Positions 40,053-64,000 of a DNA stretch of 64,000 bases are shown here, piece after piece. The notes beneath the pieces were generated by a model that searched no databases, was not told the origin of the DNA, and was given only the letters and a program-made list of their open reading frames with translations. Origin of the DNA: Orbicella franksi (taxonomy: Eukaryota); assembly GCA_964199315.1 (NCBI GenBank), contig OZ116699.1:24304001-24368000 (forward strand), in the 5' to 3' direction. The stretch's first letter is position 1. The number at the start of each line of letters is the position of its first letter. A program made the translations under genes and the position numbers.

Positions 40053-43000
40053 TTAAGTTAACGTATTTTCTTTTTGCTTTCTTCTGTGTTTCCTTGCAGT
40101 TGGTTTGTCAATACGATATCTCTTATCTTCTCCAGTGGCTTGCGCTGCCCTTGCCCCTTCCGCAGTCTTGGCCTCAACGGTGATTGGTCCGAACCCTACG
40201 GGTGAGTTAATAAGCGTCTGTCCGTCAGAGCTAGGAACTTCCTCTGTGGAGTACGATCCTTCCTGGGTAATTCCTTCGTGTCCTATAACTTCTGGATGAA
40301 TTCCGTCGAGGTCTTCATCCTCTCTGAAGTTGTGTAACCGCCTTCGGTATTGAGGTCTGTGAAGAATACGCCTTGTGTAGGTCGGGTAACCAAGTCTGAG
40401 AGGATGGCGAAAAAGAGATCTGTCTTGAAGTAAACCCGGGGATGAAAAGCTTGCAAATGAGTTCAAATCATTTCCTGGACGAGAAAACGCGTTTGAAACC
40501 AGTGGCGAGATAAAACTTGAAGGAGCTAAAGATGATGACATCATAGATGATGCCAGTGGTGATGTCATCCGCTGCGATACCGCCGGCGATGACCTTTCGG
40601 CCAAGTTGGTACCCAGGTTAGCCATGGGTGTCACCAGAGATGACGTCATATAGCGGAGTGGTGTTGAGTCCAAGGAGAGAATATTTCCCAGTGACTGAGG
40701 TCCTGCCATGCTTACCTGCTGTTGTACGCCTGACGGCTGCATGCCCACCTGTTGCTCCATGCCTACAGGCTGCATCCCTAATGACTGACGTGTAAACGGC
40801 TGCTCCTGTAATAGTTGCTGCTGAAGTTGTAGCTGACGTAACTGCAACGGTTGTGGCGGTAAGACTTGCTGAGTGAACGTTGTTTGTAATGGCTGTAGTT
40901 GCTGTAGCGATTCCAGGGTTGGTGTCAGCACCAGCTGTCGTTTGTAATTTTGAGACACGTCGTCTTGTAATAAGTCGTCCACACTGTTTGAATCTTCAGC
41001 GGCTAGAATTGGCTCAACTAGAGTTTGTCGCTTGACTTTCCTTTTGTCTTTAAAGTGCTCTTGCTGGTGTTGTTTCTTGGCTTTCTTTTCTGAGGATCCA
41101 GGGACCTTGGATCTGCTCACCACTGGAGACCGTCGCATTAACGAGGAAAGGTCGACATACCGCGCCAAGGGTTGTTGACCAATCAACGACCCCCCTGTAG
41201 AAAAGAATTATATATTACTTTTATAAGGAAATGTACTGAGATATTCATAATCGCCCAATGGTTTATTTACTGACATAAAGAACTGTGCTCAATGCCCGTA
41301 TCTCGTTTTCTTTAACGAACAATGGGCTTAAAATTGAATTGATATGCGGAAATTGTTGATTCTTTCAATCATTTAGCTGATTCTTTCAATGTTACTAGAG
41401 GAGGGATGTAAATTTTATACTCGCTTTCTCTCTCAACCCCATAACGTTTTCCTATTTCATAGTCCTCCTCGCCCTGAGTTTAATTTCATCTTCGCTTCCA
41501 CTAGCGGCTTTCGGCTTTCTATAAAGAAAACCACGGTGCTGATTGACTATCGAAGCGTATCAGCCGATCACTCATAGCTTCGCAATGTTTCCATATAGTT
41601 ATCTTGAGGAAATCTAACGTAGCCATCACTTGTTGGCAATAAATGTTCTCATAGAATATATTAGGTAATTTTGATTCCCGTCATTCGGGTCACGTGATGA
41701 ACACTTAGTAGATAATTCTCGCGCGACGATCCCTTTTGTGCACCAGTGATGACACGGTAGTCACGTGTTCCACAACAATGAAAATGTTGAAAAGCTTATC
41801 CAACCACACAACGAATGAATGGAATTGAAGGCGTTATGTTTGAGGTCAAGGTTACAGGTAAGTCTCACTCGTTTTAAGGAAAATGATAAACGCATGAGAG
41901 ACATCAACAATTAATACTGACTGGATTTACAATTTATCAAAAAATGGGGTTCTTTCCAGGAGCTATGAATTGCTTATATTTCATTTTGTAAGCTCTGACA
42001 ATATTTACATGAGTCAAAATTCAACAAAAGCTGCACTGTATATAAGTTCAGTTTCTGGCAAACATACCAAGTAATCCATTGGTAAGGGGAAGAGAACTCT
42101 GTGCGCTGTATGGCTGAGCCAATGGCGAAGGGATGTACGTTCTTCCATAACCCATCATAGCACCTCCATACTGTGTTGCTCCTAGGTAAGATGGTACCAA
42201 ACCCAGAGCACTCCCTTCTGCATTCACACCTGGTGTGCCTAACGCATTACCATAATCCAAGTCTCGCAATGAATTCAAATTTCTTTGTCTTAAGAGCGAG
42301 TTATATAGAGATGTTAGGCCATTCAACTCACTGTAGAGCCTCTGATAGCCTCGTAAGATATCAGAATTATCTCGGTGTCTTGAGGAACCTTGTGAAGGTA
42401 AAATACTTCTTGACAGACCTGACTCTTGTAGACTTTGTTGGGGGGTGAGCTGTGAGGGTAGTGCAAATAACCCTGCTGTTTGAGGACTTTGTCGGGCACC
42501 GTAAGCTCCAAGTCCTGAACCAAACAGAGCATACTGAGGTAAGGCACCATATCCGTAACTTCCGTAAGCATTTAGGCCTCCTGGAGAAGACAGCAACGAC
42601 GGTTGTACAAACTTAGGAACCGCAGAGATAAATTGACGCTTCCGAGATTTGGAGCCCCTCTTGTGATCACTTGTACGCGGAATATCCGACTTGTGTGTTC
42701 TGACTCCGGTTTCATCTTTGCTCGGTCTGGGAAACCTTTGTCGCTTTACCCCGTTGTAAAACCAGTCGTGACCGAACGGACCGAACGGTAAGTGGTATCC
42801 ACTATGGTAAAACATAGCTGGATGATGATGAATGACCGGAGGAGGAGCATAGTGCTGCGCGAGGTGAATTGCTGGGTGAAATATTGGAATCGCTGGGGTG
42901 CCAGGCTTTGCCACAACTTGAAGAGACGCTGGTTTGGCGTTGACTTTCACTCCAGCAGGGTTGGCATTCACTTCAATCTCTGCGGCTTTGTCGTCGACTT

Positions 43001-43142
43001 GAAAATGCGACGGTTCACCAGATTGAGTCACTGTTCCACCATCTTCAGGAAAAGGTCTTGGTCTAACGCGTCCATTAAAAGCGAACAAACAAAGAATACA
43101 CACTGTTACCCGAAATCCATCGCCAAAACAAAACCATATCAT
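40053..43142 (-). CDS. Secreted low-complexity polyprotein A, about 738 aa; exons 42068-43142 and 40053-41194
   Basis: Donor CTT G|gtatgt at 42068 and acceptor ttttctacag|GG GGG TCG at 41194 are both phase 1. There is a hydrophobic N-terminal segment (FRVTVCILCLFAF) and four KR|Q sites (KRQRF, KRQFI, KRQTL, KRQLV). His/Pro-, Gly/Tyr-, Gln- and Ser/Met-rich blocks follow. No Cys after the N-terminus. Confidence 0.8.
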
Positions 43143-46100
43143 GCTTGTACGTTGGTAATAAATATTGACGCCCGTTATTTTGGTTTAGAAAAGAAAAACA
43201 TGTCTATTCTTCAATAAAATGAAACCAAAACCGAAACCTTGTGGTTCACAGATACTTTGCGGTGAGATCATGAAAATGGTAAATAATAAATAACTTTAAC
43301 CACTATATCAACAAGTGGCTCAATTCTTTCGAATCATTTTCTATCATTGTTGCTATAAACGCCATATTACTAAAGCGATGGGCGTTTCTCTGCCTTAATA
43401 GTCGATAAGGTAGGTAAGACTTTGGTCGAAAATAACAATTTGATGCGAGATCAACAAGAAAGAGGAGTTAAAAACGTCGATAATACTACAAATCAAATAT
43501 GGAAAACAACAAATTCGAGTGTTTGTCTTAAATTATTCTAATTTTGTTGGACCTAACTTTAATTGAGTTCCCATGTCTTTGGGTTTGATAACAAAAAATA
43601 GGAACAGAGAAACTAGCGAAGCCGGGTGGTTTCTGTCACCCATTGGCTAAGGTTGTCGTCATGGCAATTTATTTTCTTGAGACAGATCGATAAAGGCGGA
43701 GCGCCCAATGGGGGGAAGGAAAAAGCCGACTTTCGAACGCGTAACAAAAATGAGAAAAGCGTCTGCACGGAAGGTGGAATTCTTCGACCAGACCGAAGAT
43801 TAAACCCTATTTTCTAGTGGTCTGTTTATTTCAATTATCATTTCTTCGTTAAAACGCACTTAACGTGAGCTTAACATTGACTCTAAACCGCTGATTCAGA
43901 ACGGCTGAGTTTCTTTTGAAAGCACAGCCCGTGTAATGTAAATTACTTGCAAGATTGATACCTCACTAGTAATCAATCATTTGCATCCCTACGCACCAGT
44001 CCGAGTAGTGGGTTAACTTCGGATAAAGCTGAAGCTTCAGATTCGAAACATTTTTAGTTTAATAACTCGTTTCATTTCTCGTTTGAGCCTAAATGCCTTA
44101 AATATCCCCAAACCTACGTTACTCGCGTCTATTTACATTTGAGCAGGATACCCTGCCTTAAAGCCAAGTCCACTTTAGTTTACTAGCAAAAACTGTCCGG
44201 CACGGTCATCATTCAAGCCGAATTAAGCATGTTCGGCCGACGCTGACATTGTGATATGCGATTCTTCCCGATGTGTTTCAGTTATTAGCCTAGGCGATTT
44301 ATATCTCTCTTAGTCCTTTTCATCCCGAGTGAAACATAAGGCGTCAACGATCTGCTACCAACTTCGCAGCATGTTGTGCCTGGCCCCATGGCAAACACAA
44401 GTCAGGCGCTTAATATGATCATTTCTAACCGTCTCCTCTCGTATCGCCGACGAGTTGTTTCGGAATGGGGAATCCGTGGAATTTCTCCAAGCAAACTCTT
44501 TACTGTGGGAAAGAATGAACCCTATAAAGCTAGAATATTACTACATGTCGGCTGACCTGGCCAATTGTGCCCAAGATTAATAGCAAGTGAATTGTCAAAG
44601 GTTTAAACGCCTTGTTATTCCGAAACATGTCTTACTGACCCTTCCTAAGAGCTAATAAACAGACTTAAACATTTCAAAGGTTTTTTCTTTTTTTTTTCGT
44701 GAACGCGGAAAGCAGAATCGGTTCTAGCGTACAGCACCATACTGGCAAACTGGCAGAAACTAAGGATTAAATGTCAAATATATCTTTTAGGGAAATGTTA
44801 ATCTCTAGATCGCTTTAAATGGACGTTCTTCGCGGTGAAGTAGCAAAGAGTAACGATCCCGATTCCCCAAAACTACAAAACAATTAATTTTCAAACGTGC
44901 AGTTTTTCTTACAGGGGAGGGGGCGGGGGTGGGTGGCACCATAAACAAGAAACCACGTAAATTAAGGTTATTCCTTTAATAAATTCCCCATCATGGAGGG
45001 AGTAATCAACGGAATATAGACACGGGTAAACCCCTCAAAATGTTTCATAAAGGAGAAAATTCACTGAACAAACCAGCTGGGAGCAATTATTTTCACAAAT
45101 CGTTAGTTTTATTTTGACAATTGCTTAAAACAAAATGAGTAACTTTTTTTTTTCTTCGGATAAAAATCATTTGTGAGGTAACCGTCCTTGAAGCCCATTT
45201 TCGGCTCTGGTGCAGTCTCCGACACAATAAAGCAATAAGGTGTACTACACACGTGACACATTAACGTGGGCGTCTGTCTTGTTTCATTCAAAATGTCAAC
45301 ATGTCAATCTCCGCAGGGATTTACAAAATCCCTTTCGAGTCTTTGGAATCGCGTAAAAATCATTCCATTGATAGTAGAGCATCTCTAAATATGGGGACCA
45401 CTGCTTGGCACTTTGAAGGACCCCATTCTGAAAACAAAAACAAAATACTATTGCTGGTCATACAAATTACAACAAGTCTGTACAAACATCAATCTCAGTG
45501 AACAATGGTCAGAAGTTAAAGGACCGTTTCGTAAGAGAGATGAATGTCAAAGCGTAAGTTTGTGGGGTCCTGTAACAGTTAATTAAAGTAGCATTTTTCA
45601 GTAGTTCTCGTCAAAAAACATATTCCCGTCCCACTGAAAAATGTTGTTTACAATGTTAATGTTGAAGTGGTATCCGAGATAGAATGATGGCACGTGTTCT
45701 ACTACACTTTTGGTCTCTTTCAAATGCAATACGTTTTGTTGACGCAATTTACGAACAAAACACAACATTCTCGATAACTGTCCTATACCGTTCCAATTCG
45801 CCTTTCAAAATCTCCGATAGCATTTCATTCTTTTGATATCCCCACTAAATGAAATTCAAATTTTCCATTATATGAACTGGGTAAATTGTATGGAATTTTC
45901 GTACTGTTTTTCAGCTTTTCGGTGGTTCACTGTTTGGTTTCTACTAAAATAAAGTCAAGAATAGATATTTCTGACAGGAAAACGATACGCAGCACAGAAG
46001 CACAAAGAGAAGCGATTCATTACTAATCAACCTGCACACTTCTAAACTAGACCAAAGCCACTGAAGCGATAGATTGACCTGTTCCATAAAATAACATCCA

Positions 46101-46525
46101 CGTATTTTAGAGAGAGAGAGAGAGAGAAAAAAAAAAAACAGTTTTCCGTTGAAAATAAAACAAAACAAAACAAACAAACAAACTTGAAATGAACCATTTC
46201 AAGAATAGATTATTTTCATATAGACGTTTTTAGAAAAAAATATCGACAAGGGCTGCATGAGGGACGAAAAAATCCCTCATACCTCGACCGTAAAGAGCCC
46301 GTGAATAAGTTTCAAAGCAAAATGCCGTTACTGAGCAAAGTAAATGTAACTATTGCTAGTGAATTTATTGTGATTTATGGATAACAAACGCCCGTCCTGC
46401 AATGTCGGCTTCATTTGCTACATGTACTGATTACTTATAACTATACAAAGTAGAAATATTCACATCCAAGTCTTTTTGTCGTTGCATAAAATTGTTTACC
46501 TACCAATTCGATACAGCATCGAATT

Positions 46526-48526
46526 TTATTGTCCTGGTCGCGGAATCTCTGTTTTCTTGACAATGGCTGCATTTCTTCCACTGTCAAGGGGATTTCTTGT
46601 GAGGTAGCCTCTGGTTATCTTTCTAAGCCGTCCAGGGATGAAAGAACGGGGAACAGTCGACCTAGCCTCTTCTCCACCGAGACCGCCCGCCATTGGTGAA
46701 CCCATCGATCCACCAAGACCCGCAAGACCACCAGGAAGCTCCTCAGGAGCCGGCTGTCCACCAAGACCACCTAGACCTCCAGCGTCAGAAAAGCTGTTGG
46801 CCCCCATGGGGGAACCTTCGTTCCCACCAAGGCCTGCTGCACCTCCGAGACTTGCTCCCGCAAGGCCAGCAAGGCTATCAGCACCAGGACCCATTTCTCC
46901 TCCTTGTCCGCCTTCTGAGAACGAGCTTGGGTTGAATCCCTCCCCGAAGGCTTTCGCAGAAAGATCGCCGAAAGCTTCACCTGGATTACCACCTTCCAAA
47001 GGGCTGCCATGACCAGCAGCCAAATCGCCTAATCCTGCAGGACTTGCCCCTCCGTGTTCGTTTGGATGAACAAATATTACTGAGTCACCATTGGGTCCAG
47101 AGTTAGCGTTGGAGAACATTTGACGCCTTAGCCTTGTGGAAGCTTCCTCAATGGATCTTGTACTGACTTGCTTATCTTCCTCTGCTTTTGGCGTCTCACC
47201 ACTATCTTCTTGTGAATCTCCACTTGATTCCTCTGTCGCTGTTTGCCCTGCTTCTGTATTTGCAGTAGGTTGCGTTACATCTGTTGCCTCTTTTTGCGGC
47301 TTTTCGTCCTCGTACTCTGCTTCTTTATCTCCACTACTCTGCTCAGCTTCATCCTTGACAGTCTCCGCGGAGCTCTCTTTTTTAGAGTCCACAGCCTTAG
47401 CTATCTTTGATCGCTTCTTCCATCCACCATAAGGGTGCACAATATGAGGCTGGTGAATGACAATTGGAGGACGATGATAGATTGTAGGTGGAGAGGTGAC
47501 ATGCACAGCTGGGAAGTGATTTCCAGCGTTTATGATAGGCACAGGAGGCCCAAGATGGACAGCGGGAACATGGGGACGTACATGAATGGCTGGGACATGA
47601 GATGGGACATTTATAACTGGAACATGTGGACCAATATGGACTGCAGGTACGTGAGGCCCAATATGAACCGGAGGATAATGTGGACCAACGTGAATGGGTG
47701 GAGTGTGAGGTCCTACATTCACTGTGTGGGGAAATGGATGCCAACCAAACCACTGACGTTTGACTTTCTGTGCTACGATTTCGCGTTTTGATTTCCCTTT
47801 ATGCTTATGAGATTCACTCTCGTCTCTTTCAGAATCATCATCACTATCATCATCGTCCTCTTCTGCATTTTCAGGTATTGTGGAGCGTCCAAAGTAACCG
47901 GGTCCCCCAGCAAACCCACCAAAGCCTCCATAGCCTCCATAGCCTCCATAGCCTCCAAACCCACCATATCCGCCAAAGCCTGCGGGATATTGAAAGTGTG
48001 GTTGATGGAAAACAATTGGTGGTTGATGATATACTGTCGATGGCGACATAACGTGCACCGGCGGACCGGTGAGCGCATTAACGGCGTGAACGGGCGGCGT
48101 CATATGAACAAAAGGCACATGTGGCCTGACGTGTAGAAGGGGTGCGTTTGTTCCATAGTGAAGACTTGGAACTCGAGGACTAAGATGAACAGCGGGCACA
48201 TGTGGTCCAATGTGAACCGGAGGTGCGTTTGGTCCAATATTCACGGGCGGACTATGCGGGCCCAACACTGCCGTGTGCTCGTATGGATGAAAACCTTGTA
48301 AATGAGGGTAAGCAATAACTTGAAGCTTTGAAGGTTTGGCTTGAACTTTTACTCCTTCGGGATCAGCATTCACAACCAACTCCGGCGGTTTTTCATGAAC
48401 AGTGTAACGAACGGCATTTTTCCTTGGGCTTCGTTTACTTTTTGCACCTTTCGTTAAAACGCCGGTTGAAAAACATAACAATACTACCCCTAGCAGACAT
48501 AGCCATAATCCCCGAAAGGCCGCCAT
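46526..48526 (-). CDS. Secreted His/Pro/Val- and Gly-rich polyprotein B, 666 aa, single coding exon
   Basis: ATG at 48526 gives MAAFRGLWLCLLGVVLLCFSTGVLT, a classical signal peptide. It has two GPHVPAVHI-type nonapeptide arrays, a GGY/GGF tract, acidic spacers and a Gly/Ala/Leu-rich block. Sites KR|QWFG and RR|QMFS. Confidence 0.88.
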   Translation of the reverse strand: MAAFRGLWLCLLGVVLLCFSTGVLTKGAKSKRSPRKNAVRYTVHEKPPELVVNADPEGVKVQAKPSKLQVIAYPHLQGFHPYEHTAVLGPHSPPVNIGPNAPPVHIGPHVPAVHLSPRVPSLHYGTNAPLLHVRPHVPFVHMTPPVHAVNALTGPPVHVMSPSTVYHQPPIVFHQPHFQYPAGFGGYGGFGGYGGYGGYGGFGGFAGGPGYFGRSTIPENAEEDDDDSDDDSERDESESHKHKGKSKREIVAQKVKRQWFGWHPFPHTVNVGPHTPPIHVGPHYPPVHIGPHVPAVHIGPHVPVINVPSHVPAIHVRPHVPAVHLGPPVPIINAGNHFPAVHVTSPPTIYHRPPIVIHQPHIVHPYGGWKKRSKIAKAVDSKKESSAETVKDEAEQSSGDKEAEYEDEKPQKEATDVTQPTANTEAGQTATEESSGDSQEDSGETPKAEEDKQVSTRSIEEASTRLRRQMFSNANSGPNGDSVIFVHPNEHGGASPAGLGDLAAGHGSPLEGGNPGEAFGDLSAKAFGEGFNPSSFSEGGQGGEMGPGADSLAGLAGASLGGAAGLGGNEGSPMGANSFSDAGGLGGLGGQPAPEELPGGLAGLGGSMGSPMAGGLGGEEARSTVPRSFIPGRLRKITRGYLTRNPLDSGRNAAIVKKTEIPRPGQ

Positions 48527-50001
48527 ATCGGGGAAAAGTAAACTTGTAAACAAATACGGCCTTGCAGATTCTGTTTAAGCGCAATAAGTCAAAACACAAG
48601 AGATCTGTCGATGGTCTTAGTGGTCAAACCGAGATTACTTCACTCCCAGGGAATTTTTTGCTATGATTTAATCTTTTATCATCTCATCGCACGTGGCAAT
48701 TAGTTTTCACGGATCAATAGCAGTTTATGGCAGCGTCACATCATACAATAAAACCACCGGCGGTTATTTTCAAATAGCAGGTTTATTTAGGAATATGCTA
48801 TTCTTACTGGAAGAATGGTGTTCACGCTAATCAACGAACAAAAAATAGATTAATAAATTTTTCACAGGACGTTTTCCCAGATTGACTTCCGTGTAACTAC
48901 GAGTGTAAAAACCAGGTTAATTACACCAAAAACATAGAATGTTCACGCTTTTTATCTGGCCAGTAGTAAATTGGTTAACATCCTGGCAAGTGATAACTTT
49001 CATTAAAGACGACAGTGACAGATTTATAGATCTCTTCCACTCTCCGCGATGTGCGTTAAAATAATTAAAAGTTGTCCAACCTTATCTCCTAATACGTCTC
49101 AAACAAAATCTGCTGATAAAACTCTGTGCTCGTGCAAGTTAACCTAGACATTGAACTAACATCAATAGCTTCTTGCATGGTTCATTATCCACAAACAATT
49201 GAAGACCAAACAATTCAATTTCGTGTTGATGTTTTTCTTTTCCGAGTTGTTGTGACTACTGAAGCGAATTTCTGTGGAGAATAGCAAAACTGGAAACGAT
49301 ATCGTTCATTACAAATAGAAAATACGTCCACACTTTTAAACGAACAAAGTTAACAACCAAGGTCACCTTGTATTTCGTTCCGAGCACGAAATAACGGCAA
49401 ACACCGAGTAATAATATTAAAAAAAAAAAAAACACAAGAAAAACGAATTAAAAAAGGCAAAGTTGTCACCACAAAATTTATGTACCAAACATTAGAGCTA
49501 AAATCAACGAAATTGCTTCTCTTAGAAACATAATGCAGGAATATCTTAACAGTAATTGGTCTTCTAATTTCCAGATTACAAAACAAAGAAATAACACAAG
49601 GATAGGCACAGTCGCTTGTGAAACATACCTGTCGCTTCAAAACGATTTCACAAAATGACCGTTTTAAATACATTTCTTAAATCAGCAAACATCACATAAA
49701 GGCAAATTATCATAATTGTTTTTTTATTGGTTTTCTGTGAAAGTTTAGACGAATCGCGATAAATACAAGACATAAAGGGACAAACAATAATACACAGGTA
49801 CCAACAACCATTAAATTTTAAATCTTCTATTGCGAGAAACAAAGTTCTTCCCGGTGAATTGCTTTAGTAAGGGGAACACAATTGAAAGGATTAAGTGTCC
49901 AAACTGTTTGTTTTTAAAAGAAGAAAACATTGAACTGTAGAACCCGATTGAACAGAAGACAATCATCTTGGAGACAGTTAGCTACTGCCCCCTACTCTTG
50001 A

Positions 50002-50312
50002 GGCCCTGTCCACGCTACGCCGGAGAAATTTAAAAACGCAACAATCACCGGTCGCTTTGGATTTGTGTTTGCGGAAAACTCGGTCAGGAAAATCACACGA
50101 TTATCGTGACAATATCGTTTTGGAAAAGCTCCGTTTTCAAAATGAGTTCCGTCTACGCGAAAACGAAAAGCTGGGCATGGCGTTTTCAAACCTCCGGTTT
50201 GAAGAGCGTTTTCGAAAAGCTCCGTTTTCGTGACGGATTGTGTGGACGGTAGGCCTAACCGAAGAAAGAAAGCCGCGTTTTCAAATTCCTCCGGCGTGGT
50301 ATGGACGCTGCC
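50002..50312 (+). mobile_element. PIF/Harbinger-type MITE (family of 14476-14767)
   Basis: Termini ggccctgtccacgctacgccggagaaattt ... ccggcgtggtatggacgctgcc with flanks TGA/TTA. The interior is colinear with the 14.5 kb copy. Confidence 0.85.
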
Positions 50313-51055
50313 TTAGATTTTGAACTGGCGTTCTTGATAACCATGTATCTTGTATAGGTAAGCACTACAGTTTTACGACACAAATTTACTTTCGCGCATT
50401 TGACCAGTGTTTTACCTATACAAATGCATTAAAGTACAACTCGTCTTGCTAGTACCTATGTTCTAGGAAGTTTCTTCTCGCCGTTTCGTTATTGTCGTTA
50501 CCTGCGCGCTACCAATTACATCGTTATTTTAAGGAGAAATTAGATGCCGATCACTATCACTTGTGTGTTAAGTGTTAAGTTGCGCTGGTGACCGTATAAT
50601 TAATCAAAAGGCCTGTTTGTATATGTTGGTCCTATCATATTGTAAATCATTAGTCAGTGAGAGTAGGTCACTCAAAGTACTCGATTAAGTTCGAGGAAGG
50701 AAAAACGTCTTATCAGTCATGTCGTAATAGTTTCATATATAGGGCCATAAGGGAGACTACAGTCTTGACGGTAATTATGCACCCTATTGAAATAAAGTGT
50801 TATCATCATTATCGTTTTCATGAGCTGATAGAACTGACAATTTTACGATGATAAAGCTGCTCCAAGTCCATGATCCCGAGAGCATTTTCTTTCGTTAACT
50901 AATTACCTGCTACCTCAATGTTGACAGAACTGTTTTACACGGGCCTTGTACGAGTAGAATATTACGCACACTGTGCAAGCTTTCTGTTCAGCTGGAAAAA
51001 GTGGAAAGAAATGATCGTTTGTTGCTATTCTAGCCAGATAGTATCATTTTCCGCC

Positions 51056-51078
51056 AATAGACCATATTCGTATTCTCT

Positions 51079-51111
<33 letters not shown>

Positions 51112-51237
51112 CGTGGCGGGGAATATCATTAAAAAGGGATAAATGCTATTTGCATTTGAAACGATTCCCCGCATTAATATTAGCCTCAGTTGCAAGCTAG
51201 TTCCAGTCCAATACCGAGAACACTGATATGGTCTATT
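51056..51237. mobile_element. MITE with about 40-bp terminal inverted repeats
   Basis: aatagaccatattcgtattctctgtattggactggaactagcttgcaa ... ttgcaagctagttccagtccaataccgagaacactgatatggtctatt. Confidence 0.8.
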
Positions 51238-51457
51238 ATGAAACGTTAAAACTGCTGAAGCTGAATCTCATTTTCTGCCACCTTCAAGCTTTCAAAGCAA
51301 CGAGTACAAACTTTCAGCTTCTCCTCGGCTTGGGTTAAACATGTTGGATGTATATAAAACTGCATTCTACTTATTTAATCATAATCTCATAGCTCGTTCC
51401 TCTTACTCTTAGGAGAGAACATCAGATTCTGGTAAAAATTTGTTTTTACACTTCCTC

Positions 51458-52809: not shown

Positions 52810-52813
<4 letters not shown>

Positions 52814-52858
<45 letters not shown>
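52814..52858. repeat. (TA)n microsatellite
   Basis: Read directly from the sequence. Confidence 0.95.
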
Positions 52859-52862
<4 letters not shown>

Positions 52863-53154
52863 TTTCAACTTCATCTCCACACTAACAGACCGAAAAAGAA
52901 AAAAACAAAAAAAAAAACAAAAAAAAAACCACACTGTATACAATGAAAAATACTTACAATACAATGCTACAGTACAACATTTATCTACTACTTACTTGGT
53001 TATAGTTACAGTACTTACATTCCAGAAAACTTTTTCCCCTCCCCCTATTGTATGTATATGATATTATTTAGGCATGATTAACCCCTTTTACAGTTTTTAC
53101 AATAACCTCTTGGATTTCTACCTTGCTTAAAAGAAAAAAAAAAACCGCTGATAA

Positions 53155-53398
53155 TTTCACATTACTTATATTTCTACCAAAAAAAAATGCTATTTATTAC
53201 AATATTTTTTCCTTTTTTTTCCTTTACTAGTTACCACACGCTGTTACATAATGCTGGTGCACACTTTCATGTAATTCTTAACGACTTAATGATTCACATT
53301 ACTTATATTTCTACCAAAAAAAAAATAATGCTATTTATTACAATTTTTTTTTTTAAGTGGTTACCACACGCTGTTACATAATGTTGGTGCACACTTTT
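53155..53398. repeat. Tandem duplication of an about 140-bp AT-rich unit
   Basis: ttcacattacttatatttctaccaaaaaaaaa...atgctatttattacaat...gttaccacacgctgttacataatg.tggtgcacacttt occurs twice. Confidence 0.85.
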
Positions 53399-55727
53399 TA
53401 ATGACTGAATGATTTTGTTTCTAGTTGATCTGAAATATTGTGTCTAGATTTGGGGAAGCATGCTCATTATAAAAAGCGTGTACAAGATAAGAAACAACAG
53501 AGAAAAGGGAAAAGGAACAAGGACACATAAGAACTCAAACTGCTAAGGAGGCCGCAAGTCCAGGTGTAAGGTTTTGGAAAAGTAAAGAGTAAAATTGGAA
53601 AGAGAATTGAATGGCAAAAGGGGAGCTGCTAAAAGAAAGAAGTGGATTAAAGTCACTAAAGTCATTAAAGTTAATAATAAAGTGAAGGAATTGAAATATG
53701 TTCTGTGGACTGTGGTTTTCCTTGAAATGATCCCCACTCAGGTCAACTGACCCTTTCATGGCCCCAAAACTAATCTCCTCTAAAATTTGCTATATTTACA
53801 GCAAAAAGCACATGTATGATGACTATGTGTAGCCAGACTGACAAAATTGTTTAAAAGACAAAATTATATATGTAAGCATGGCAAAGCAAAGCTTTTTGCT
53901 TTCATTACCCAGTAGTGCATTTCTTTGATTAAGTGGCAATTATTTCAAATTTCAGGTTTACAATATCTCTTGTGGGTCTTCGTCAGTCTGTCCACAGACC
54001 CTCAAGGAAAGTATTACCTGCAGGCGATTTGAAAGCTAGGAGGTGGCAGGGCTGGGGAAAGACAAAAATAAAGGGTCTGTGAACTTCTTTTGAGAAACTG
54101 AATTCCCTGTTTCTCTAGAAACAGAAAATTCCCTTTGGCTCAAAGGCAATCAACATGTCATGACTGTGTCAATGATCATGGCGTGTTATTTGAAGCAGTT
54201 GTTGTCACCTCATACAGGGTAGCTTGCCACCAAATTTATATCATGTGACCGTAATGTTACACTGTCTATCTTGACACAAAACTGTGTAAATGAAAGGTAG
54301 CCCACCTCTTCGGTGGAATCTTTGGATTTCAAACTGTAATATCCCTAGTCGTGTTATTCAATCATGAAATGTTTTCCAAACTCTACTTGAGTATTTCATG
54401 CTCTGTTCTGTAAGCAATAAACGTAAGATCGCATGGGCAGTCTGTTACTTCTTGTGGCCTCCCTACTGCAAAAACGAGAAGTGTTGATGGATAAGGCCCT
54501 TTCCCAAACTGATAGAAAATATGGCTTTGTAGCCTACTAAAGTAAGATGGTTTGATTTCCCCCCTCATTTACTTTTTTATGGAGTTGAAATAGTTCTTTG
54601 ATGACATACTCCAACATACTGTATGTACATGTGTAATAATGTATGGATGTTGTTTTGCATATTTTTATCTTTTCAGATGTTGCTCAATTTAACTTAGGAA
54701 GTGAGGGCAGACTGAGGTGATTAAATGAAAAGTAGCTAGATGACATGGAGGAGAGGAAATAAAGAGCAGGAGCTACATAGTGTCTTCTGACTTGTACTTC
54801 ATTCTAACTGCTTTCAAGGATTAAGTAATGATTTAATGTTTGTATTAAAAATTTAATAATTTAGTGAAAGTGGAGACACTGAGGATGATCAAGCAAAAAC
54901 CGTGGCATTCACTAACATTAATGATGACCCCAGAAATACACTCCTAATGGTTTCTTTTGTGTAGTTGCCTCAGAAACATTACTGTGAATGTTTTAAAAAT
55001 CGCTTTAGAAATCTTATCATTTACAGTGCTTTTCATTGAATACAATAAATGATAACACTCTAACATCTTGAAAGCAATAAAATTGCACGATGCGATAAAA
55101 AACATGCTTGCGTGAGCACCACTGAAAGCGATGTGGGAATTTACTAGCAAGGAAAGGACTTTAACTGAATTACCAGCGATTCTTATAGGAAGCTGCTAAG
55201 TAGAAACCTAAGATAGGGGGAGTGTAAACTATAAAGATCTATCACTAAAACAAGATGAAATAAAAACTTTGAAAACTGGGGCTCTGCCACGTGTTGGACT
55301 TAGTATAATAGGCTGTTGTATAAAAAACCGAGACTAAAGGTACTTAAGGTTAAAAAACGTCAACACTTGAAACTTATACTAAAAAACAAGCATAGGATAT
55401 AGTTTGTACTTACACATCGGTTCCCGCTCGCATTCTAAATAGGCAAGGGTAACTTAAAACTTAATTTACTTAAAAACACGTACTGTGCAGGATAACTGAA
55501 ACCTGAAATACTGGCGGAAATATGCCGCTAACACTATCTATATACGTCCACGTGTAAAACTAATGACGTCATTGCTAAGCAACAAATTGGCGAATCAGAA
55601 AGGATTAAGATTACTCACTTAATTAGAGAAGCCTCTATATAGTGTTCATTACAGTAATAATGGTGTCTAGCAGCTGTTTATCGGTGGTCATGTGTGGAGA
55701 TGATTCACCCGTAGGGTCAGAATTTGT

Positions 55728-56339
55728 TCACTTAAGAAACGGTGAAAATAGATGAAGTCTCGCACAAGAAAACCACCAGGCCAGTTGGTCGATGTTAACG
55801 TGTATGTCGGGTATCGACCAATTACAAAAGAAAAGACAAAACAAATCCATTACGATCGCAACAGTTTCATACTCACATACAATATGTAAATTGCAGGCCG
55901 TCTTAGTGTAGTTGAGGCACTCTGTAGTAAATATGAGGGCCATTAAATTCATTTCCATTAAGAACACTCGATATTCATAACAAATAATGCCAGGCGCATT
56001 CGCGATGACCGAAAGACCCTGGACTAGCTATTGCTCTGTCATTGTTCGATCGAGAAAATGCAAAATACAGGGCTTGCTTCTCATCATCCGCATTGCATGC
56101 GAAGTCCGACATCGTGGAGAAAGCCTTGAGCTAGAGGATGTTCTGATGGTGTTCATAAACAAGTGGCAAAAAGGGTGACGATTACACAATGCGTAACATG
56201 CCAAAAGACTGTCACCGTCGACCCACCATTGAAACCTACCGAAACGAAACGAACCGCAGTCAAGGAAAATAAGTATCACACTGTCGCCCCTCGCCGATAT
56301 TCCATATCCTGGAAGGTAGGTAAATTTTTCTTTACGCAT
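55728..56339 (-). pseudogene. Unidentified decayed reading frame (204 codons, one internal stop)
   Basis: ORFs 56028-56339 and 55728-55967 are in the same frame, separated by one TAG. An acceptor-like ccttccag lies near 56311. It has hydrophobic segments but no secure homology. Confidence 0.2.
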
Positions 56340-56945
56340 TTACAGCAATAGAGAAGCTTAATGTACATGAAGATATCCTTCGCACTCAGATATAACCTGT
56401 CACTTTAGTGCGTGACGCACTAACGTGACACGACTGACGAGTAAAAGTACGCAGACGCTCTTTGGGATCGTCACAGAATCTTTGTGTGACGAGCCCAAAG
56501 AGCGTTTGCGTACATGCGTAAGAGGCTAGGTGAAAAGCGATTTATTTATTTTCAAGAAGGCACGGTAACGAATCCTGTCATCTGATTGGTTCTTAGCGCG
56601 GTCAGGATTTTCCTATCTCTGACCACGGTCACGGTAACGCTTTCACAGCGGATGAAATTGTTGTGTTGATCCATTTTCGTGAGTGAACAAGCGGTAATCG
56701 TCAACCGGTGCCCTCTTTACACTTCCATCGACGATTAATCTACACAGTGTTTTTCTTTATTCAGTTTCAAAAAAAGTAAAATGGCAAGGAAAGTCTATGT
56801 AAGTTACCTCAAACAAGTGTATTATTTGTGAGAGTTGCTTGGTTGTTTATAGCTTGGCGCTGTTTCGGCGCGTAATTCGACGTCATAATGGGAGGGGTGG
56901 CGGTGGGGGGGGGGGGGGAGGGGGGTGGAGAATTGCCTCGAAGCT

Positions 56946-57003
56946 GATTCCCGTCCCCGGGGGCCGCGCTCCTTTTGGTCAGCACCAAGAATCGCGACCT
57001 CTG
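56946..57003. mobile_element. Solo terminal-repeat fragment of the 31802-32021 MITE family
   Basis: attcccgtccccgggggccgcgctccttttggtcagcaccaagaatcgcgacctctgg matches one TIR. Confidence 0.8.
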
Positions 57004-59249
57004 GGTAGGTCCAGTGAGATTCCGGTTCTAATTGGCTTTGGAAACAATAGAATGAGACTGGAACCAATTGGTTGATATATAGTTAATATGCTTAGAGATC
57101 ATGGCCTGTTCTAGGCATTCGGTTAGTATTAAGGACCGCTCATCTTTTTCTGTAGCGATCGTAGTGATCATGTGGAAACATGGAACAGGCTTATCCTCTG
57201 AGGGAGAGAAGAAAAAAAAGACGTAAGCAGCAAAAGAACTTTAGATGATTGAGAAGATCGGCGGTGGTAGCGATCAGTGATTAGAGGGAAACAGGTAGGC
57301 GTAAGGGTCGCTCAATGCTTTTTATAGAGATCTTAGCGATCATATGAAAACCGGCCTTTCCGCCCTTTAAGGAGCGACCAGTTGGTACGCAAAAACAGCG
57401 TATTGATCAGACGTCAAACATGCATGGCAAATACTCATATCCATCATCACTACATGTAACCATAAAGACATTAAACCCCAACACTCAATCCATTTTCAGC
57501 TATTGTAAGAACAGAACGAGACCAACTAAGAAAACAAAACTGGGTTTTCATTTTCCATGCAGTTACTTCGATGCTTAACTCGATGAAGTTCCTTCATCAA
57601 GTTAAACATCGAAAAGGAGGAAATCAGGACAGTAAGCAAAGCTTCTAAGCAAAGCTTCTAAGTCTCAAACAGACTGATATGGAGCACGGCTGAAAAATCT
57701 GTAAGAGGTCACACAAGCAGATAAGCTAGCGGTACAAAATAATTAAAATTCAATTTTTATTGTCACAATTGTCTCTAAAATGGCTCAAAACTTCATCAAA
57801 GTGTTTTATTCATAGAAAATGTTTTTGATGTTTCATATCGCGTTTATCATATACGTTATCGTTCTGTGGACTTAGGAGCCAGTAAAAACTCAAAGAGATC
57901 TCACTCATGCAAATTTGACGCAACTCCAGGTAACGTTCTGTCTAACCTTGGATAACAAACTGGATATAAACAATTATTTTAGCTCCTAGATAGCAGCAAT
58001 CTTTGAGATATATTCACTTATATTATAAAAGCCAATTTGCATGGGACAATGCCGTTTGCTTTTGTTGCAGGACACAAGCCCATTAAGGAAAAACATGTAT
58101 GATGTTAGCCTGATGATTGTAACAATAATTGAAATCGCTGTATATCCGTAGACGAGACATGGCTAAAAACAAAATCAGACCGTGCTTTTCCCTTGGGTTT
58201 GTTCCAGGGAATTAATGGATTGTTTTATGCAAATTGGCTCTTAAAGAAAAATTCCTGTGTCCACTGATTCGTATTCAGTGGGCAGTTATAATACTAATCC
58301 TAGAAACTGATTTCGCTTCAATATCTATCCGCTTTCTTAGAAAGAATAACTTGCACTACCATTGAAATAGATCCGTTTTGTTCACTGTTCGGTAGTATGA
58401 TCGACAGAAACACGAATACCCCATGTCGATTGGGCCATGGTCATCATTTCGTGGTTCATAAGAAGATGGATAAGTTTGAATCATTCGTTCAATTTAATGT
58501 ATTTAAGGTCAAGCCATGTTCTGCTACACGCAACGCTGCTTCAGCTAATTTTAGCCACTTTCAGACGAAAAGAGAATATATTTTGCAACGGGCGTTGAAT
58601 CATCACGAGGGTGTTGCAAGTATCTACAAAATTCCATGCCTAAGTAGGCTTCACAACCCCATTCCGTTTTGTTCTTTTACTCCTCTCGATAACGTATGTT
58701 GTGCAAAACCACATCAGGCCCTAAAGTGAAGAAGCAAAGAGATTTCCTGTTAAATTACGGAGGAACAACGTTCCCAAATAGAACATAATGACAATTAATT
58801 ATAACCGTTTAGTAAGCCCTGTTGTCTGACTAACCCCGCCCTTGTATATCGATTCAATCGAGGTTTATTTTACTTGCTTTGAGCAATCTCTTGATTAATC
58901 AACCTTAACTATACTAATATCTGAAGATAGAGGGAAATATTACTTACATCTTCAGATCGATACCAATTAATTACTTTCCTTATAGTACTTTTAAAATTCT
59001 TTTTTTTTCCATTACGATACACGTTTAAACGAAGTAGTTGCCGCGCAACTACTTAATCGTTTTATTGATTAGTTAATTAATTTGATATATGCACTTGCGT
59101 GTGATTAATGTATTATTCCGTTTATTGTTACTCTTTACTAATCACCACCTCAGTTATTCTAAACGTGAACGTCCAGTCAGTACACTAGTAATGCTAGAGA
59201 CAATCGTTGAACATGTCATCATACCTCGAGCACTATTTTCACTCCCGGC

Positions 59250-62200
59250 CTAGCCACGATTGGCTGAGCCATTCGCGTGCTGCGTGGAGTGGTGTTCCCT
59301 TACAGGAACGTTGGACCTTGACGTTTCCACATTAACATGCACCGATGGTTTATCCTCTTCTGGTTCAGGAAACAAGCTGGGTTGGGCTGGAATCGGTGCG
59401 ATATTAGGAACCGGTGCGATATTAGGAACTGGCATAGGAATAACTGGTGGAAGCATGGGTGCTAACGGTGGTGGGGCCTGTTGCGGCTCTGGTGTGGGTT
59501 CTTGCAGTGCTGGAGGTTCTACCACGGGTGGAACTGCCATAGGGGGTGCGAAAGGAAGTATTGGAAACATTCGTGGAGCTAAAAGAAGTGGGTTCCCCTG
59601 AGGAAGCGGTGCAGCGGGCAAAGGTAAATTTCTCAAAAAGGCCCTATTGATTGCAGGCAGAGGTAGAATAGCTGGTCCAGTTGAAGGTAGGTCTGATAGT
59701 GGGATATTGGTTGCACCCTCTCGTTCTAGTGTATCCAGTTGTGGTCCAGCTATACCACTAGGTGGACGAAATAAAGGCTCACTGGTCACTCCAGGTTCCT
59801 GTGCCAACGGGGGAGCTGTCTCTGCTGGACTGTCTTGAAGTATAGCTTGTGCACCTAAATCTGAAGGAAGCGTGCCTTCTAAGGGGTTGGCGGCTCCTTT
59901 AAGCGGCAGAGCTCCAACTCCAGTAGGACTGTCAAGTCGTATTCCTCCGAGCTTTGGTCTCTTTCTTCCAGCAGCTCCACCTGCAACTAGGTTTGAAATC
60001 GGATCTGTGAAGACTTCAACGGGCTTGTTAAGGTTGTTACCCAAACCAAACAAGTTCTCCTCGCGTGGTTTTTTTAAGGGTTCTGGGACGAACTTTGGAC
60101 CTCGTCTTCTTTCAATAACGCCGCCTCCAAGAAGATCAAACTGCCTTTTAAATTTCTTTGTTTCGTGATTTTTTCCAGTTGCCAGATGAGATCTTGGCAT
60201 GTTAGTTTCAAGTTCATGACTGTGAAACTTTCTTTCTGGGTTTGGCACGAGTGATTTAGCCGTTTGTACATTTATGCTCACGTGAGGACGTTGAAATGTA
60301 TTAATTGGGCTAACAGAGGATTCTTGAGGTTGAGTGGTTAACACCGAACCTTGCTGATTTTCCTCAGTTTGGGCCAGGTATGGTTGAGAAGCCTCTTGGT
60401 CGTTTGTTTGCGTCAAGGAGGCTTGCGGAAGGTTCATTTGTGTTAGCTGTGCACCGGCATCCTGTTGAAAGGCTTGAATGGGCTGTATTGAAGCCTGTTC
60501 TTGTTGAGGTTCACTGATACTTTGCAAAGACTGTGTGGGCAGAATTTGTTGTTCCTGTTGACCTCCTAGATAATTATATAGCTGACGTTTCCAAGTACGC
60601 TTGTCTTTTCTACCCGCTTGAATGCGATTTTCTTTTATGATTTTCCCTTTTGTGGACTGTGGAACAGTTGATCTTCCATTTTCCTTACTAACGCTACCAG
60701 TCACAGCTGTCTGCCCTAGTGAACTAAGAAGAGGAACGGTTCCAAACAATTGGCGTCTCGATTTTCGCTCTGGTGTCTGTTCCTTATGATGGCCAAAGCT
60801 CTTTCCACGATCATTATTTGTAGATATCAGAGATTTCGCTGTCTGAACACTAATGCTCACTTTCGGTTGTGTTTTGTGTTCTAGAGGTAGCGTAAGTGTT
60901 TGAAACGGTTGAATTTGCTGCTGTTGCATAGGTTGTACAAATGCAAGTGGCTGCTCCTGTTGCGGTTGCGGTTGCTCTTGCTCTTGCTCTTGCTCTTGTT
61001 GTTGTTCAAGCGATTCAGATTGAGGTTGTGGTAGCATGGAAACCTGCTGGACACCTTGTTCGTTTTCTTCTTGGTTTTCACCCGTCAGGAATTGAGTATT
61101 TTGAATAGGATTGCCTTGAATTGTATTTGATCCTTCGTTAAATGGAACCGTAAACTGCCTTTTTACTGTAGTTCTAATCTTTTTCTTAGACGTAGTGCCT
61201 GAAATATCATGTTTCTTTCTGGCTACATCGACCTTAACAGATACGCGAGGTCTTTGGTCTCCGAGCAGAGTACCTGTGTTGGCGACAGTTTCTGGTTCAT
61301 TCACATCGGGCTCATAGTCTTCAGGTTCTTGCTCAAGTTGGTGAAGTTGCGGCATGCTGCGTTTCAAAGAATTAGTTTTGATAGTGCCAGCTTTCCGTTT
61401 ATCATTTGATCTTTTAGATGCTTCCACTTGAACGGAAACATGTGGGCGTTCATAATCAATCTGGCTTACACCTGCCTGAGAGGGCACTGCATCTGAAGGT
61501 AGTTCTTGTGCCTGTTGCTGTTGAAGTGTTGCAGGATTTGAATTAATAGCTGCCGTTGATAACTGATCTAGTTGAGGTTCCTCTTGAACGTGGATAGGAG
61601 ACTGTGAGAAACTACCTTGTGCTGGTTCATCGGATTGTAGTGGTTCTTGATCGTTGATCGTTGCAATGGGTTCCTGAGCCTGTTCGAAAGGCTGTGCAGG
61701 AGGTGCCTGTACACCGAATACTTGACGTTTACTGATCAAATCATGCGAGCCTTCTTCATCCGAGCGCTTAGACGCCTCAACATTGACAGAAACGCGGGGA
61801 GTGTGCACTGAGCTAGGCAAATATTCAAGGGCCTGACCTTGATTGATTGCCGGGAAAGGTAACCCTTCATGCGGTAGTTCCGACAGGCCGTAAATTTGTC
61901 TCCTTTCCTTTTTGATCGGTTCGTTTTGGCTCATTAGTTTATTCTTCTTTTTGGCAGTTTCTACGTGGACTGACACACGGGGTCGCTCATTTTTTGAAGG
62001 GACCTGTGAAAGTAGAGGTGGACTGACAACTGGAAGGGGAATCATGTGCGGAAGCTGTTCCATTCCATATACTTGTCTTTTTGATTTCGAGTTCTCCTTT
62101 GCTTCAAGTTTTTCAACAAAGCTGGGCAACCTCCGCTTTACGCTTGTAGACGATAAAGGTCCGTGACGTTTTCTTCCTGGGAATGCAGACTTTCTCTTGC

Positions 62201-64000
62201 TTACATCCACATTTACTGAAACTCGGGGTCTTTGATTGACAGCTGGTTGAAGAGCCAATGGATACGGCTGAACGGCCAACGGTGATTGCGGTACTGCGTA
62301 GAATTGGCGTTTCTTTGCATTTTCCTTTTGTTTCATTTCTGAGGATTGGCCGAGTTTGCTTCTTAGACCAGTCTGCCTCTTGTCACCCATTTTTGGAATT
62401 TTGTATTTTCTTTGTCGCTGTAGCTCTTCTAATAACATGCCATTAGCCTTGATTCTATGATTTACAGGTAAGGTGTTGAACGCTGGCATCAAAATGCCAT
62501 TCTGCTTGAAAGTCTGCGGGAGAACTTGCATAGCTGGAAATCGTGTTAACAGTGAGATGCTTTGGCGCTTGTTGTGGTCTTTTTCCACCGCTGATTTTTT
62601 TGTAGTTTGCACGTTGATAGATACACGGGGATTGTTGTTGCTTGGCATCGGGGCAGCTCCGTTGTAAGGAATAGGAATTCCATAGGCGGGGATTAAACCT
62701 TGTGTTGAAGCGACAAACTGTCGTTTATGGAGTGTGTTTTTTACCTTTTTAGAATGTTTCTTTGGCACCGTTGATTTTGCCGCGACATTGACATTAATGG
62801 TAGTATGTTTTGGTTGTTCCTCTTCAGTTTGTATTGCTTGCTGGGGAACTGATTGCTCAGACACTGGGAGAACTGAAGCTCCCGGAAGGCCACTAGAGAT
62901 CATACCTTGAAAAGGAACTGCAACTTGTGGTTGGAAAGGTGCCTGCAAAGGTGCCTGCATAGGTGCCTGCAAGGGTGCCTGCAAAGGTGCCTGCAAAGGT
63001 TGTTGTATTGGTGCTCGCAATGGTACATTACCTCCACGAAAAGCAAGTTGCTGTGCTTGAGCCGGTATCATCATTGGTTGGCCTTGAGATGGTGATATTT
63101 GCTGAACTGAATTTTGTTGTAGCTCCTGCCTTTGACCAACCATTTCCGGATACTGTTGCTGCTGGGCAGCCTCGTTCTGACCTTGGAGCTGCTCGTTATC
63201 GTTTGACGCAGCTCCCTCCTCACGTGGTGCTTCTTCGCTTGTAGCAACAAATTGATTCTCTGGTGCATTTGAAAAATCGGGGTTAACTTGGTTTTGGTTA
63301 ATTTCCTGACCATTCTCTCCACCTCCTATAAGTTCGTCCCTTTTATCACCAGTTTTATGCTCCTCAAGATGCTTAGTATAACCTACTTTTGGAGACCTCC
63401 TTTCTTTTGTCATTGAAGGTATCCCATTCTTCTTTGCTGTCTCTACGTTAATGTTGATTCGAGGAGAGTTCCGATGGAAAGGGAACCCTTGTACACCATA
63501 ATTTAAAGCTGTGGGCAAGGTATAGTGACTTGTTAGTGCTGAATGCGGTAAGTAATTATATATTTGTCGTTTGAAAATACGTGGTCGGGAAAGAACATCT
63601 TGCTTGTTCTCCATTTTAGTGGCTTTGGGTATATGTGATTTTGATGCTTGTACGTCTACGTGGACTTTAGGTTTGTGATCGCTGTGATAAAGAGGATATC
63701 CAAGGAAGTTACGATAAAGTGCACTTAAGTAAGACGCCCATGGGTTAAGCGTCGGTGACTCACTGCCATCGTCTTCTGGTAATGTGCTAAATAGGTTGTG
63801 GATGGGTTGTGTAGGGAGATGAAATAAGGGAAGCGCTTCAGGGTAACTTGCATCGTCGGGTTCAGTTTCCTGAGGATGTGGCAAAGGTGGAAAGAAAAAA
63901 CGTGGCAGAGGTGAGTAAGGCGAGTACGGAAGAAAGTTATTCATTATCCTTGCTCCTTCTAATCCATGTAATCCCAGGGGAATGCCAGCAGAAATAGGTG
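59250..64000 (-). CDS. Giant low-complexity polyprotein C, more than 1580 aa, open at the window edge (N-terminus outside the window)
   Basis: The 1564-codon ORF continues without a stop to base 64000 (...PISAGIPLGLHGLEGARI-MNNF). It has 12 [KR]R|Q sites, 12 copies of a P-x-V-x-[VI]-x-V-[EQD]-x-x-[KR]-type motif, and Pro/Gln-rich module bodies. No Cys seen. Confidence 0.9.
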   Translation of the reverse strand, partial: PISAGIPLGLHGLEGARIMNNFLPYSPYSPLPRFFFPPLPHPQETEPDDASYPEALPLFHLPTQPIHNLFSTLPEDDGSESPTLNPWASYLSALYRNFLGYPLYHSDHKPKVHVDVQASKSHIPKATKMENKQDVLSRPRIFKRQIYNYLPHSALTSHYTLPTALNYGVQGFPFHRNSPRININVETAKKNGIPSMTKERRSPKVGYTKHLEEHKTGDKRDELIGGGENGQEINQNQVNPDFSNAPENQFVATSEEAPREEGAASNDNEQLQGQNEAAQQQQYPEMVGQRQELQQNSVQQISPSQGQPMMIPAQAQQLAFRGGNVPLRAPIQQPLQAPLQAPLQAPMQAPLQAPFQPQVAVPFQGMISSGLPGASVLPVSEQSVPQQAIQTEEEQPKHTTINVNVAAKSTVPKKHSKKVKNTLHKRQFVASTQGLIPAYGIPIPYNGAAPMPSNNNPRVSINVQTTKKSAVEKDHNKRQSISLLTRFPAMQVLPQTFKQNGILMPAFNTLPVNHRIKANGMLLEELQRQRKYKIPKMGDKRQTGLRSKLGQSSEMKQKENAKKRQFYAVPQSPLAVQPYPLALQPAVNQRPRVSVNVDVSKRKSAFPGRKRHGPLSSTSVKRRLPSFVEKLEAKENSKSKRQVYGMEQLPHMIPLPVVSPPLLSQVPSKNERPRVSVHVETAKKKNKLMSQNEPIKKERRQIYGLSELPHEGLPFPAINQGQALEYLPSSVHTPRVSVNVEASKRSDEEGSHDLISKRQVFGVQAPPAQPFEQAQEPIATINDQEPLQSDEPAQGSFSQSPIHVQEEPQLDQLSTAAINSNPATLQQQQAQELPSDAVPSQAGVSQIDYERPHVSVQVEASKRSNDKRKAGTIKTNSLKRSMPQLHQLEQEPEDYEPDVNEPETVANTGTLLGDQRPRVSVKVDVARKKHDISGTTSKKKIRTTVKRQFTVPFNEGSNTIQGNPIQNTQFLTGENQEENEQGVQQVSMLPQPQSESLEQQQEQEQEQEQPQPQQEQPLAFVQPMQQQQIQPFQTLTLPLEHKTQPKVSISVQTAKSLISTNNDRGKSFGHHKEQTPERKSRRQLFGTVPLLSSLGQTAVTGSVSKENGRSTVPQSTKGKIIKENRIQAGRKDKRTWKRQLYNYLGGQQEQQILPTQSLQSISEPQQEQASIQPIQAFQQDAGAQLTQMNLPQASLTQTNDQEASQPYLAQTEENQQGSVLTTQPQESSVSPINTFQRPHVSINVQTAKSLVPNPERKFHSHELETNMPRSHLATGKNHETKKFKRQFDLLGGGVIERRRGPKFVPEPLKKPREENLFGLGNNLNKPVEVFTDPISNLVAGGAAGRKRPKLGGIRLDSPTGVGALPLKGAANPLEGTLPSDLGAQAILQDSPAETAPPLAQEPGVTSEPLFRPPSGIAGPQLDTLEREGATNIPLSDLPSTGPAILPLPAINRAFLRNLPLPAAPLPQGNPLLLAPRMFPILPFAPPMAVPPVVEPPALQEPTPEPQQAPPPLAPMLPPVIPMPVPNIAPVPNIAPIPAQPSLFPEPEEDKPSVHVNVETSRSNVPVREHHSTQHANGSANRG

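Follow-up and report, generated by a model that had tools for sequence, protein, structure and literature searches.

Several structural precursors are known that consist of tandem modules and are cut at basic sites, among them profilaggrin, the diatom silaffin Sil1p, the nematode polyprotein allergens, and pearl-oyster Pif177. Proprotein convertases (PCs) of the PC/Kex2 type cut at dibasic pairs, and glutaminyl cyclase cyclizes N-terminal Gln that becomes exposed. Layouts similar to the one described below are known from the modules of suckerins and from the Gly/His-rich spinalin of Hydra. Here we analyze three genes, A, B, and C, which all lie on the minus strand of a 64,000-nt stretch of Orbicella franksi DNA (the window). 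In our favored reading, to which we give a probability of about 0.55, A, B, and C represent one undescribed family of secreted, Cys-free, largely disordered, matrix-type precursors that are cut by convertases. The family is probably restricted to Hexacorallia; the named members are all hexacorals, i.e., a stony coral, Actinostola, and Nematostella.

The first-pass annotation of the window had counted 18 [KR]R↓Q sites in the three products (the arrow marks the putative cleavage point), and this number holds. We find 4 in A, 2 in B, and 12 in C, compared to 0.46, 0.06, and 0.85 expected from shuffled sequences (∼1.4 in sum), and 12 sites were reached by 0 of 3000 shuffles of C. The residues after the Gln had been described as mostly hydrophobic and then aromatic; P2′ is indeed hydrophobic at 14 of the 18 sites, and P3′ is aromatic at 10. 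Arg occupies P4 at just 1 of the 18, and the sites are therefore of the dibasic Kex2/PC1-2 type rather than the furin consensus. The V-x-V-type beta motifs reported alongside them are found as well, with 11 V-x-[VI]-x-V strand motifs in C, 8 of which are located 21 to 50 residues ahead of the next KR↓Q site. In the maps of the orthologs, strand motif, basic linker, and KR↓Q again follow one another in turn. The pieces predicted between sites are 23 to 297 amino acids (aa) long and non-identical.

Another short motif, [KR]S.[IV]P, is present in 2, 3, and 5 copies in A, B, and C, where 0.06, 0.05, and 0.16 are expected (an enrichment of ∼30- to 50-fold). Examples are GRSTIPE, KSHIPK, and RSNVPV, as well as F-G-K-S-K-V-P/E in the modules of the giant protein introduced below. 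It recurs in all orthologs, often directly behind a strand motif or a Gly/aromatic loop.

The initial interpretation depended on the KR↓Q sites being kept in orthologs, and they are. Orthologs of B were found in Actinostola sp. (QZH41_003850), Nematostella vectensis (LOC5512467), and further assemblies; all are uncharacterized and have no Pfam domain. In a nine-sequence alignment, both KR↓Q sites of B and nearly all residues from 258 to 367 (the B core) are invariant across the 9 orthologs. Between the coral and Actinostola, 105 of the 110 core residues are identical, and the codons for 59 of those differ synonymously. The His/Pro/Val core of B is under very strong purifying selection, although AlphaFold2 (AF2) leaves the repeat unmodeled, with predicted local distance difference test (pLDDT) scores mostly below 50. 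For C, conservation was taken from nine aligned sequences of the C-type region. Among the five orthologs that are most distant, identity at the Arg and Gln of the sites is 71%, against 22% over all residues, 22% at Gln outside the sites, and 23% at Arg outside the sites, and 8 of the 12 sites are retained in at least 5 of 8 orthologs. Together, these alignments point to strong purifying selection on the dibasic-Gln sites.

Two further features of B can be mentioned here. After the KR site, its core starts (47744-47755 (-), residues 258-261) with the invariant Q-W-[FY]-G-W-H-P-F-P, in which W-x-x-W is a candidate C-mannosylation site, as W-x-x-W is the consensus for this modification in secreted proteins. 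Two divergent B orthologs (P0006 and P0007, from loci L003 and L004), with 42 to 50% identity, have long Gly/His/Cys-containing insertions between the N-terminal cassette and the first His/Pro/Val array. Both retain the second array and both KR↓Q sites.

The first-pass annotation presented the locus as three polyproteins. Three real, transcribed, and related reading frames are present; what has to be revised is the extent of C, which orthologs suggest to be the tail of a gene encoding ∼5,000 to 5,800 aa. We searched 1.84 billion protein cluster representatives with a profile of C residues 420-1582 (the last 1163), and only 17 proteins matched, 13 of them at E < 1e-10. Three of these are giants, of 5811 aa, 5617 aa, and, in the case of Nematostella LOC116618347, 4832 to 5088 aa depending on the isoform. 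The C of the window corresponds to their C-terminal ∼1400 to 1500 aa. From the N terminus, the giants have a signal-peptide-like leader, an acidic Ser/Thr-rich stretch, an HFQVDDK...VKV...LQVV cassette as in A and B, 15 to 20 His/Pro/Val modules, and the C-type region. Across orthologs, 11 to 20 modules stand in tandem (L002:2561-8728 (+); P0038, P0039, and P0040), each of ∼160 to 180 aa. A module has P-x-x-[IV]-Y-H-x-P-type repeats and, at its end, a Gly/Trp/Tyr loop followed by the motif F-G-K-S-x-V and a linker rich in Lys. A poly-His run is found in L002 and P0039. A further assembly has the His/Pro/Val part next to the C part, as adjoining open reading frames (ORFs) on the same strand, and in the contig of the closest relative, a strand motif continues upstream. 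Because the frame of C is open at position 63998, giant orthologs exist, and this relative carries a strand motif upstream, the C of the window most likely makes up the 3′ third of such a gene and does not stand alone. Two candidate N termini for C were rejected: the hydrophobic one of P0030, considered as a signal peptide, stems from a GTG start picked by the ORF caller, and the “M” of P0010 is a GTG of the same kind within a strand motif.

The cassette is common to A, B, and the giant, which places all three in one family. The B cassette is paralogous to that of A, and the A cassette shares 78% identity with the Nematostella giant over residues 272-307 of the latter; in the B cassette, AF2 models a hairpin at residues 50-63. 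The gene order is also shared to some extent. Synteny across Anthozoa had been proposed as a check, and the part that stands is the pair of B and A, whose orthologs in Actinostola are in the same order on one strand, with the C ortholog (QZH41_014181) placed only on a contig of equal size. The order C, B, A is thus at least partly syntenic in Actinostola. In Nematostella, a 13.7 Mb contig is reported for the B ortholog as well as for the giant.

The leaders and the composition fit secreted, Cys-free proteins. Signal-peptide calls were based on the hydrophobic h-regions of the leaders. B has a hydrophobic leader, over which AF2 models a helix (residues 2-25), A has a leader as well, and the Actinostola orthologs of both have classical ones, in agreement with the original calls of a signal peptide for B and a probable one for A. 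The N terminus of C lies beyond the window; the three giant orthologs have a homologous N-terminal leader ending in ...A-x-A-K-P-Y. The only Cys residues of A (positions 5, 15, and 18) and B (10 and 18) sit in their leaders, so mature A and B would be free of Cys, as had been claimed for all three proteins. C has none, and not one is found in the 5019 aa of the giant from Nematostella. A, C, and the giants have an isoelectric point (pI) of 9.35 to 9.9, compared to 6.5 in B, which is 14% Gly and 6% His.

The three same-strand genes are transcribed, and their annotated sizes of about 738, 666, and more than 1580 aa hold. The two ORF pieces of A, joined by contigs from three RNA-seq runs, give a spliced product of exactly 738 aa, and the B mRNA of ∼2.4 kb consists of the coding exon and a second, non-coding exon with a poly(A) tail. 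Sampled words of B are found at 0.97 to 0.99 in RNA-seq contigs from many runs, several of them labeled coral metagenome, and polyA RNA contigs contain 0.89 to 0.98 of the sampled words of C. In four runs, contig depth, which is a poor measure of expression, was 28 to 94 over the 3′ untranslated region (UTR) exon of B and mostly 3 to 14 over A, with zero depth over some parts of A exon 1 in two of the four. A pseudogene, a transposable element, or chance ORFs are ruled out for A, B, and C by transcription, splicing, and conservation. The description of A, B, and C as secreted, Cys-free, low-complexity proteins from real, transcribed, and related genes is supported. Searches with tblastn gave no additional family members between 48.5 and 59 kb nor anywhere else in the window.

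Does this family match anything already described? Neither Pfam nor the profile search matched a characterized family, which would have been at odds with the first interpretation. Pfam gave no match at E ≤ 1 for A, B, or C, including Enamelin (PF15362), and, when run on the N-terminal portions of the giants and on the His/Pro/Val modules, nothing above threshold. Cuticle_3 (PF11018) came up for the His/Pro/Val-module ORF of L002 only, at 19.6 bits (E = 0.0012), below the gathering threshold of 27.1 bits. The nearest neighbors in the ESM Atlas were enamelin (0.73), MEPE, kappa-casein, prisilkin, and cuticle proteins, at scores of 0.6 to 0.77 that are below the reliable range. No paper was found with LOC5512467, LOC116618347, or six family peptides, and no entry assignable to the family came from publications on the matrisome, spirocytes, minicollagens, spatial coral expression, and the Lophelia cnidome. 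No support emerged for B being the Nematostella “spinalin-like/fibroin-like” barb gene v1g243188 (PMC9205923), as peptides derived from the primers of that gene do not occur in the orthologs, the query being back-translated primers only. In the databases and papers searched, the family is undescribed.

How might such precursors work? A, B, and the giant would enter the secretory pathway through their signal peptides. Late in this pathway, they would most likely be cleaved behind the conserved Lys/Arg-Arg pairs by a convertase of the Kex2/PC1-2 type, and the basic residues would then be trimmed off. Each piece would start with Gln, predicted to become pyroglutamate (pGlu), followed by a hydrophobic residue and often an aromatic one, and most C pieces would end in an amphipathic beta strand and a basic tail. 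These pieces, along with the conserved His/Pro/Val arrays of B and the giant, may assemble into an extracellular or organelle matrix, speculatively through strand pairing and His-based cross-linking.

Several observations weigh against this reading. C has 14 further [KR]R pairs that are not followed by Gln, and its site at residue 540 (QTGLR) is lineage-specific. Most KRQ sites lie in A, B, and the C-type region, and few are found in the 15 to 20 His/Pro/Val modules of the giants, so processing cannot be what organizes the family as a whole. No confident fold was obtained with AF2 for B (pLDDT 41, from 9 sequences) or for C 420-1582 (pLDDT 33, from 6 sequences), which leaves the assembly model without structural support; both proteins are predicted to be disordered. 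Finally, both cleavage and pyroglutamate capping are inferred from the sequence and by analogy with convertases and glutaminyl cyclase, and the granule storage and the locations first suggested (cnidocyst, adhesive, mucus, and skeleton) are likewise hypothetical.

The main rival, which we regard as unlikely, takes KRQ to be kept for a non-proteolytic role in long, disordered chains that remain uncut. KRQ would serve as a transglutaminase-type cross-link, with Gln as the donor and Lys as the acceptor, or for basic docking to chitin, glycosaminoglycan, or poly-gamma-glutamate. The Gln of the sites is conserved as strongly as the Arg, and proteins that are rich in Lys and Gln but free of Cys need a cross-link other than disulfides. 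The family also has at least one conserved motif, [KR]S.[IV]P, that is not a convertase site, so non-proteolytic short linear motifs do exist in it, and giant uncut matrix proteins are common. However, convertases canonically act on secreted proteins at just such places, where [KR]R precedes a residue that is not acidic. In addition, the motif stands at module boundaries directly behind basic linkers, as it does in polyprotein precursors.

The proteins could instead be precursors of diffusible bioactive peptides, such as antimicrobial or signaling peptides or settlement cues, rather than structural material. A dibasic site followed by an N-terminal Gln is typical of cnidarian peptide precursors, and some of the predicted pieces are short, conserved, and basic, e.g., those of 63 aa (QSISLL...) and 56 aa (QLFGTVPL...), with a pI of 11. 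We nevertheless consider this very unlikely, given that A, B, and C contain no G[KR]R amidation sites and that most pieces are 50 to 300 aa long and differ from one another. The family furthermore includes proteins of 5,000 to 5,800 aa that are dominated by His/Pro/Val repeats, and its composition is matrix-like, as are its language-model neighbors enamelin, MEPE, kappa-casein, and cuticle proteins, all of them under a reliable score.

A role as skeletal organic-matrix (biomineralization) proteins from calicoblasts, among the sites first suggested and in keeping with a window from a stony coral, with weak enamelin/SCPP-like features, and with the known proteolytic processing of matrix precursors in biomineralization, is highly improbable because the skeleton-less anemones Nematostella and Actinostola keep the family as near-identical orthologs, and also in view of proteins that are basic rather than acidic and do not match Pfam Enamelin.

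If A, B, and the giant are convertase-cut matrix precursors, where would they act? Our leading guess, a weak one, is that they are a component of the cnidocyst. Spirocysts are a cnidocyst type limited to Hexacorallia (bioRxiv 10.64898/2026.04.17.719276). It is tempting to connect them with this family, as its named members are all hexacorals too. Under this more specific and quite unlikely proposal, the giant of 5,000 to 5,800 aa would be the main non-collagen material of the spirocyst, with A and B as helpers. The KR↓Q-cut, pyroglutamate-capped pieces of all three would be joined head to tail via their terminal strands, and the material would harden through the invariant His/Pro/Val arrays by metal or pH-dependent His chemistry, not by disulfides.

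The make-up of spirocysts, nematocyst shafts and barbs, cuticles, and adhesives in hexacorals is largely unknown, and this family is a candidate material. It is deeply conserved and polyA-transcribed in many coral samples, with a B core that is 95% identical between coral and anemone while most third codon positions have changed. No domain, name, or paper was found for the family, although one of its members is among the largest proteins that Nematostella secretes. Handles for locating the structure to which these proteins belong are the IDs of two Nematostella genes, the invariant epitope, and the pGlu N termini that are predicted, and the family offers a way to test a disulfide-free, protease-triggered assembly route. 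A near-invariant repeat that AF2 leaves unmodeled is also of interest to protein materials science.

The positions of the genes and their parts are given in Table 1. Elsewhere in the window, the ORFs 16072-16776 (-) and 19038-20006 (+) are in divergent orientation and without a Pfam match. They have a conserved C-terminal region in common (...RVRG.FYEALD.HFYH.YRN.HPERRMAICEEIER...) and look like a paralog pair. The ORF 36179-37645 (-), of 488 aa, has ribonuclease-inhibitor-type leucine-rich repeats (LRR_6, E = 7e-26) and a C-terminal EF-hand and is unrelated to the cluster.

Table 1. Features of genes A, B, and C in the window
Feature	Position	Strand	Description
Gene C	59250-63998	(-)	ORF of 1582 codons plus stop codon at 59250; upstream side open to the window edge; 0 Cys
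Gene C, parts			12 KR↓Q sites, 11 amphipathic strand motifs RP[RHK]V[SN][VI]xV[EQ][TA][AS]K, Pro-rich C-terminal region
Gene B, coding sequence	46526-48526	(-)	666 aa from ATG; single coding exon
Gene B, order of parts			Signal peptide, 3x9 cassette, His/Pro/Val array 1, Gly/aromatic loop, acidic spacer, KR↓Q, array 2, acidic spacer, RR↓Q, Gly/Leu/Ala-rich tail
Gene B, N-terminal cassette	48305-48406	(-)	Residues 41-74; paralogous to the cassette of A and of the giant protein
Gene B, core	47426-47755	(-)	Residues 258-367; from the KR↓Q-W-F-G-W site through array 2
Gene B, 3′-UTR exon	45090-45427	(-)	Non-coding, 338 nt; poly(A) site near 45090; from RNA contigs
Gene B, 3′-UTR intron	∼45428-46503	(-)	Canonical GT..AG; begins ∼22 nt past the stop codon
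Gene A, exon 1	42068-43142	(-)	Leader, cassette (42900-43007), short His/Pro stretch, two KR↓Q sites
Gene A, intron	41195-42067	(-)	873 nt, GT..AG; joint in contigs of 3 RNA runs; splice sites and frame checked
Gene A, exon 2	40053-41194	(-)	Two KR↓Q sites, Gln/Leu-rich and Ser-rich regions, basic tail, stop codon

The comparison with known systems brings out what is shared and what is particular to this family. Like cnidarian neuropeptide precursors, the family combines a signal peptide with putative dibasic cleavage sites and a predicted N-terminal Gln, which in cnidarian peptides commonly becomes pyroglutamate; unlike such precursors, A, B, and C lack amidation signals, and their pieces are long (up to 297 aa) and varied, which upholds the initial view that they are not neuropeptide precursors. 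The propeptides of cnidocyst proteins or toxins that end in Lys-Arg are alike in signal peptide and dibasic site, whereas A, B, and C have no Cys-rich domains or collagen repeats. In a search for minicollagen, NOWA, and CRD features, A and C had no run of at least five Gly-X-Y triplets, and the one regular-expression hit, in B, is within Gly-rich sequence. Together with the lack of Cys in the mature proteins, this agrees with the earlier exclusion of minicollagen and CRD proteins.

The likeness to profilaggrin, Sil1p, the nematode allergens, and Pif177 lies in secreted or stored tandem modules with basic sites, the pieces of which serve as material. There is no sequence relation to these proteins, and several features set the present family apart: its modules are non-identical, its site is strictly dibasic plus Gln, its His/Pro/Val modules are almost without sites, and its cleavage is predicted. 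With Hydra spinalin, the squid suckerins, and the Nereis jaw protein, B and the giant share an alternation of His-rich, strand-like arrays with Gly/aromatic loops, a likeness of layout and composition. SCPP proteins (enamelin, MEPE, and kappa-casein) and insect Cuticle_3 proteins are likewise large, secreted, Pro/Gln-rich, disordered, and Cys-poor, and this resemblance is compositional, not ancestral. The secretory structural precursor with dibasic processing is thus already known as a kind of system; what is new here is the family itself.

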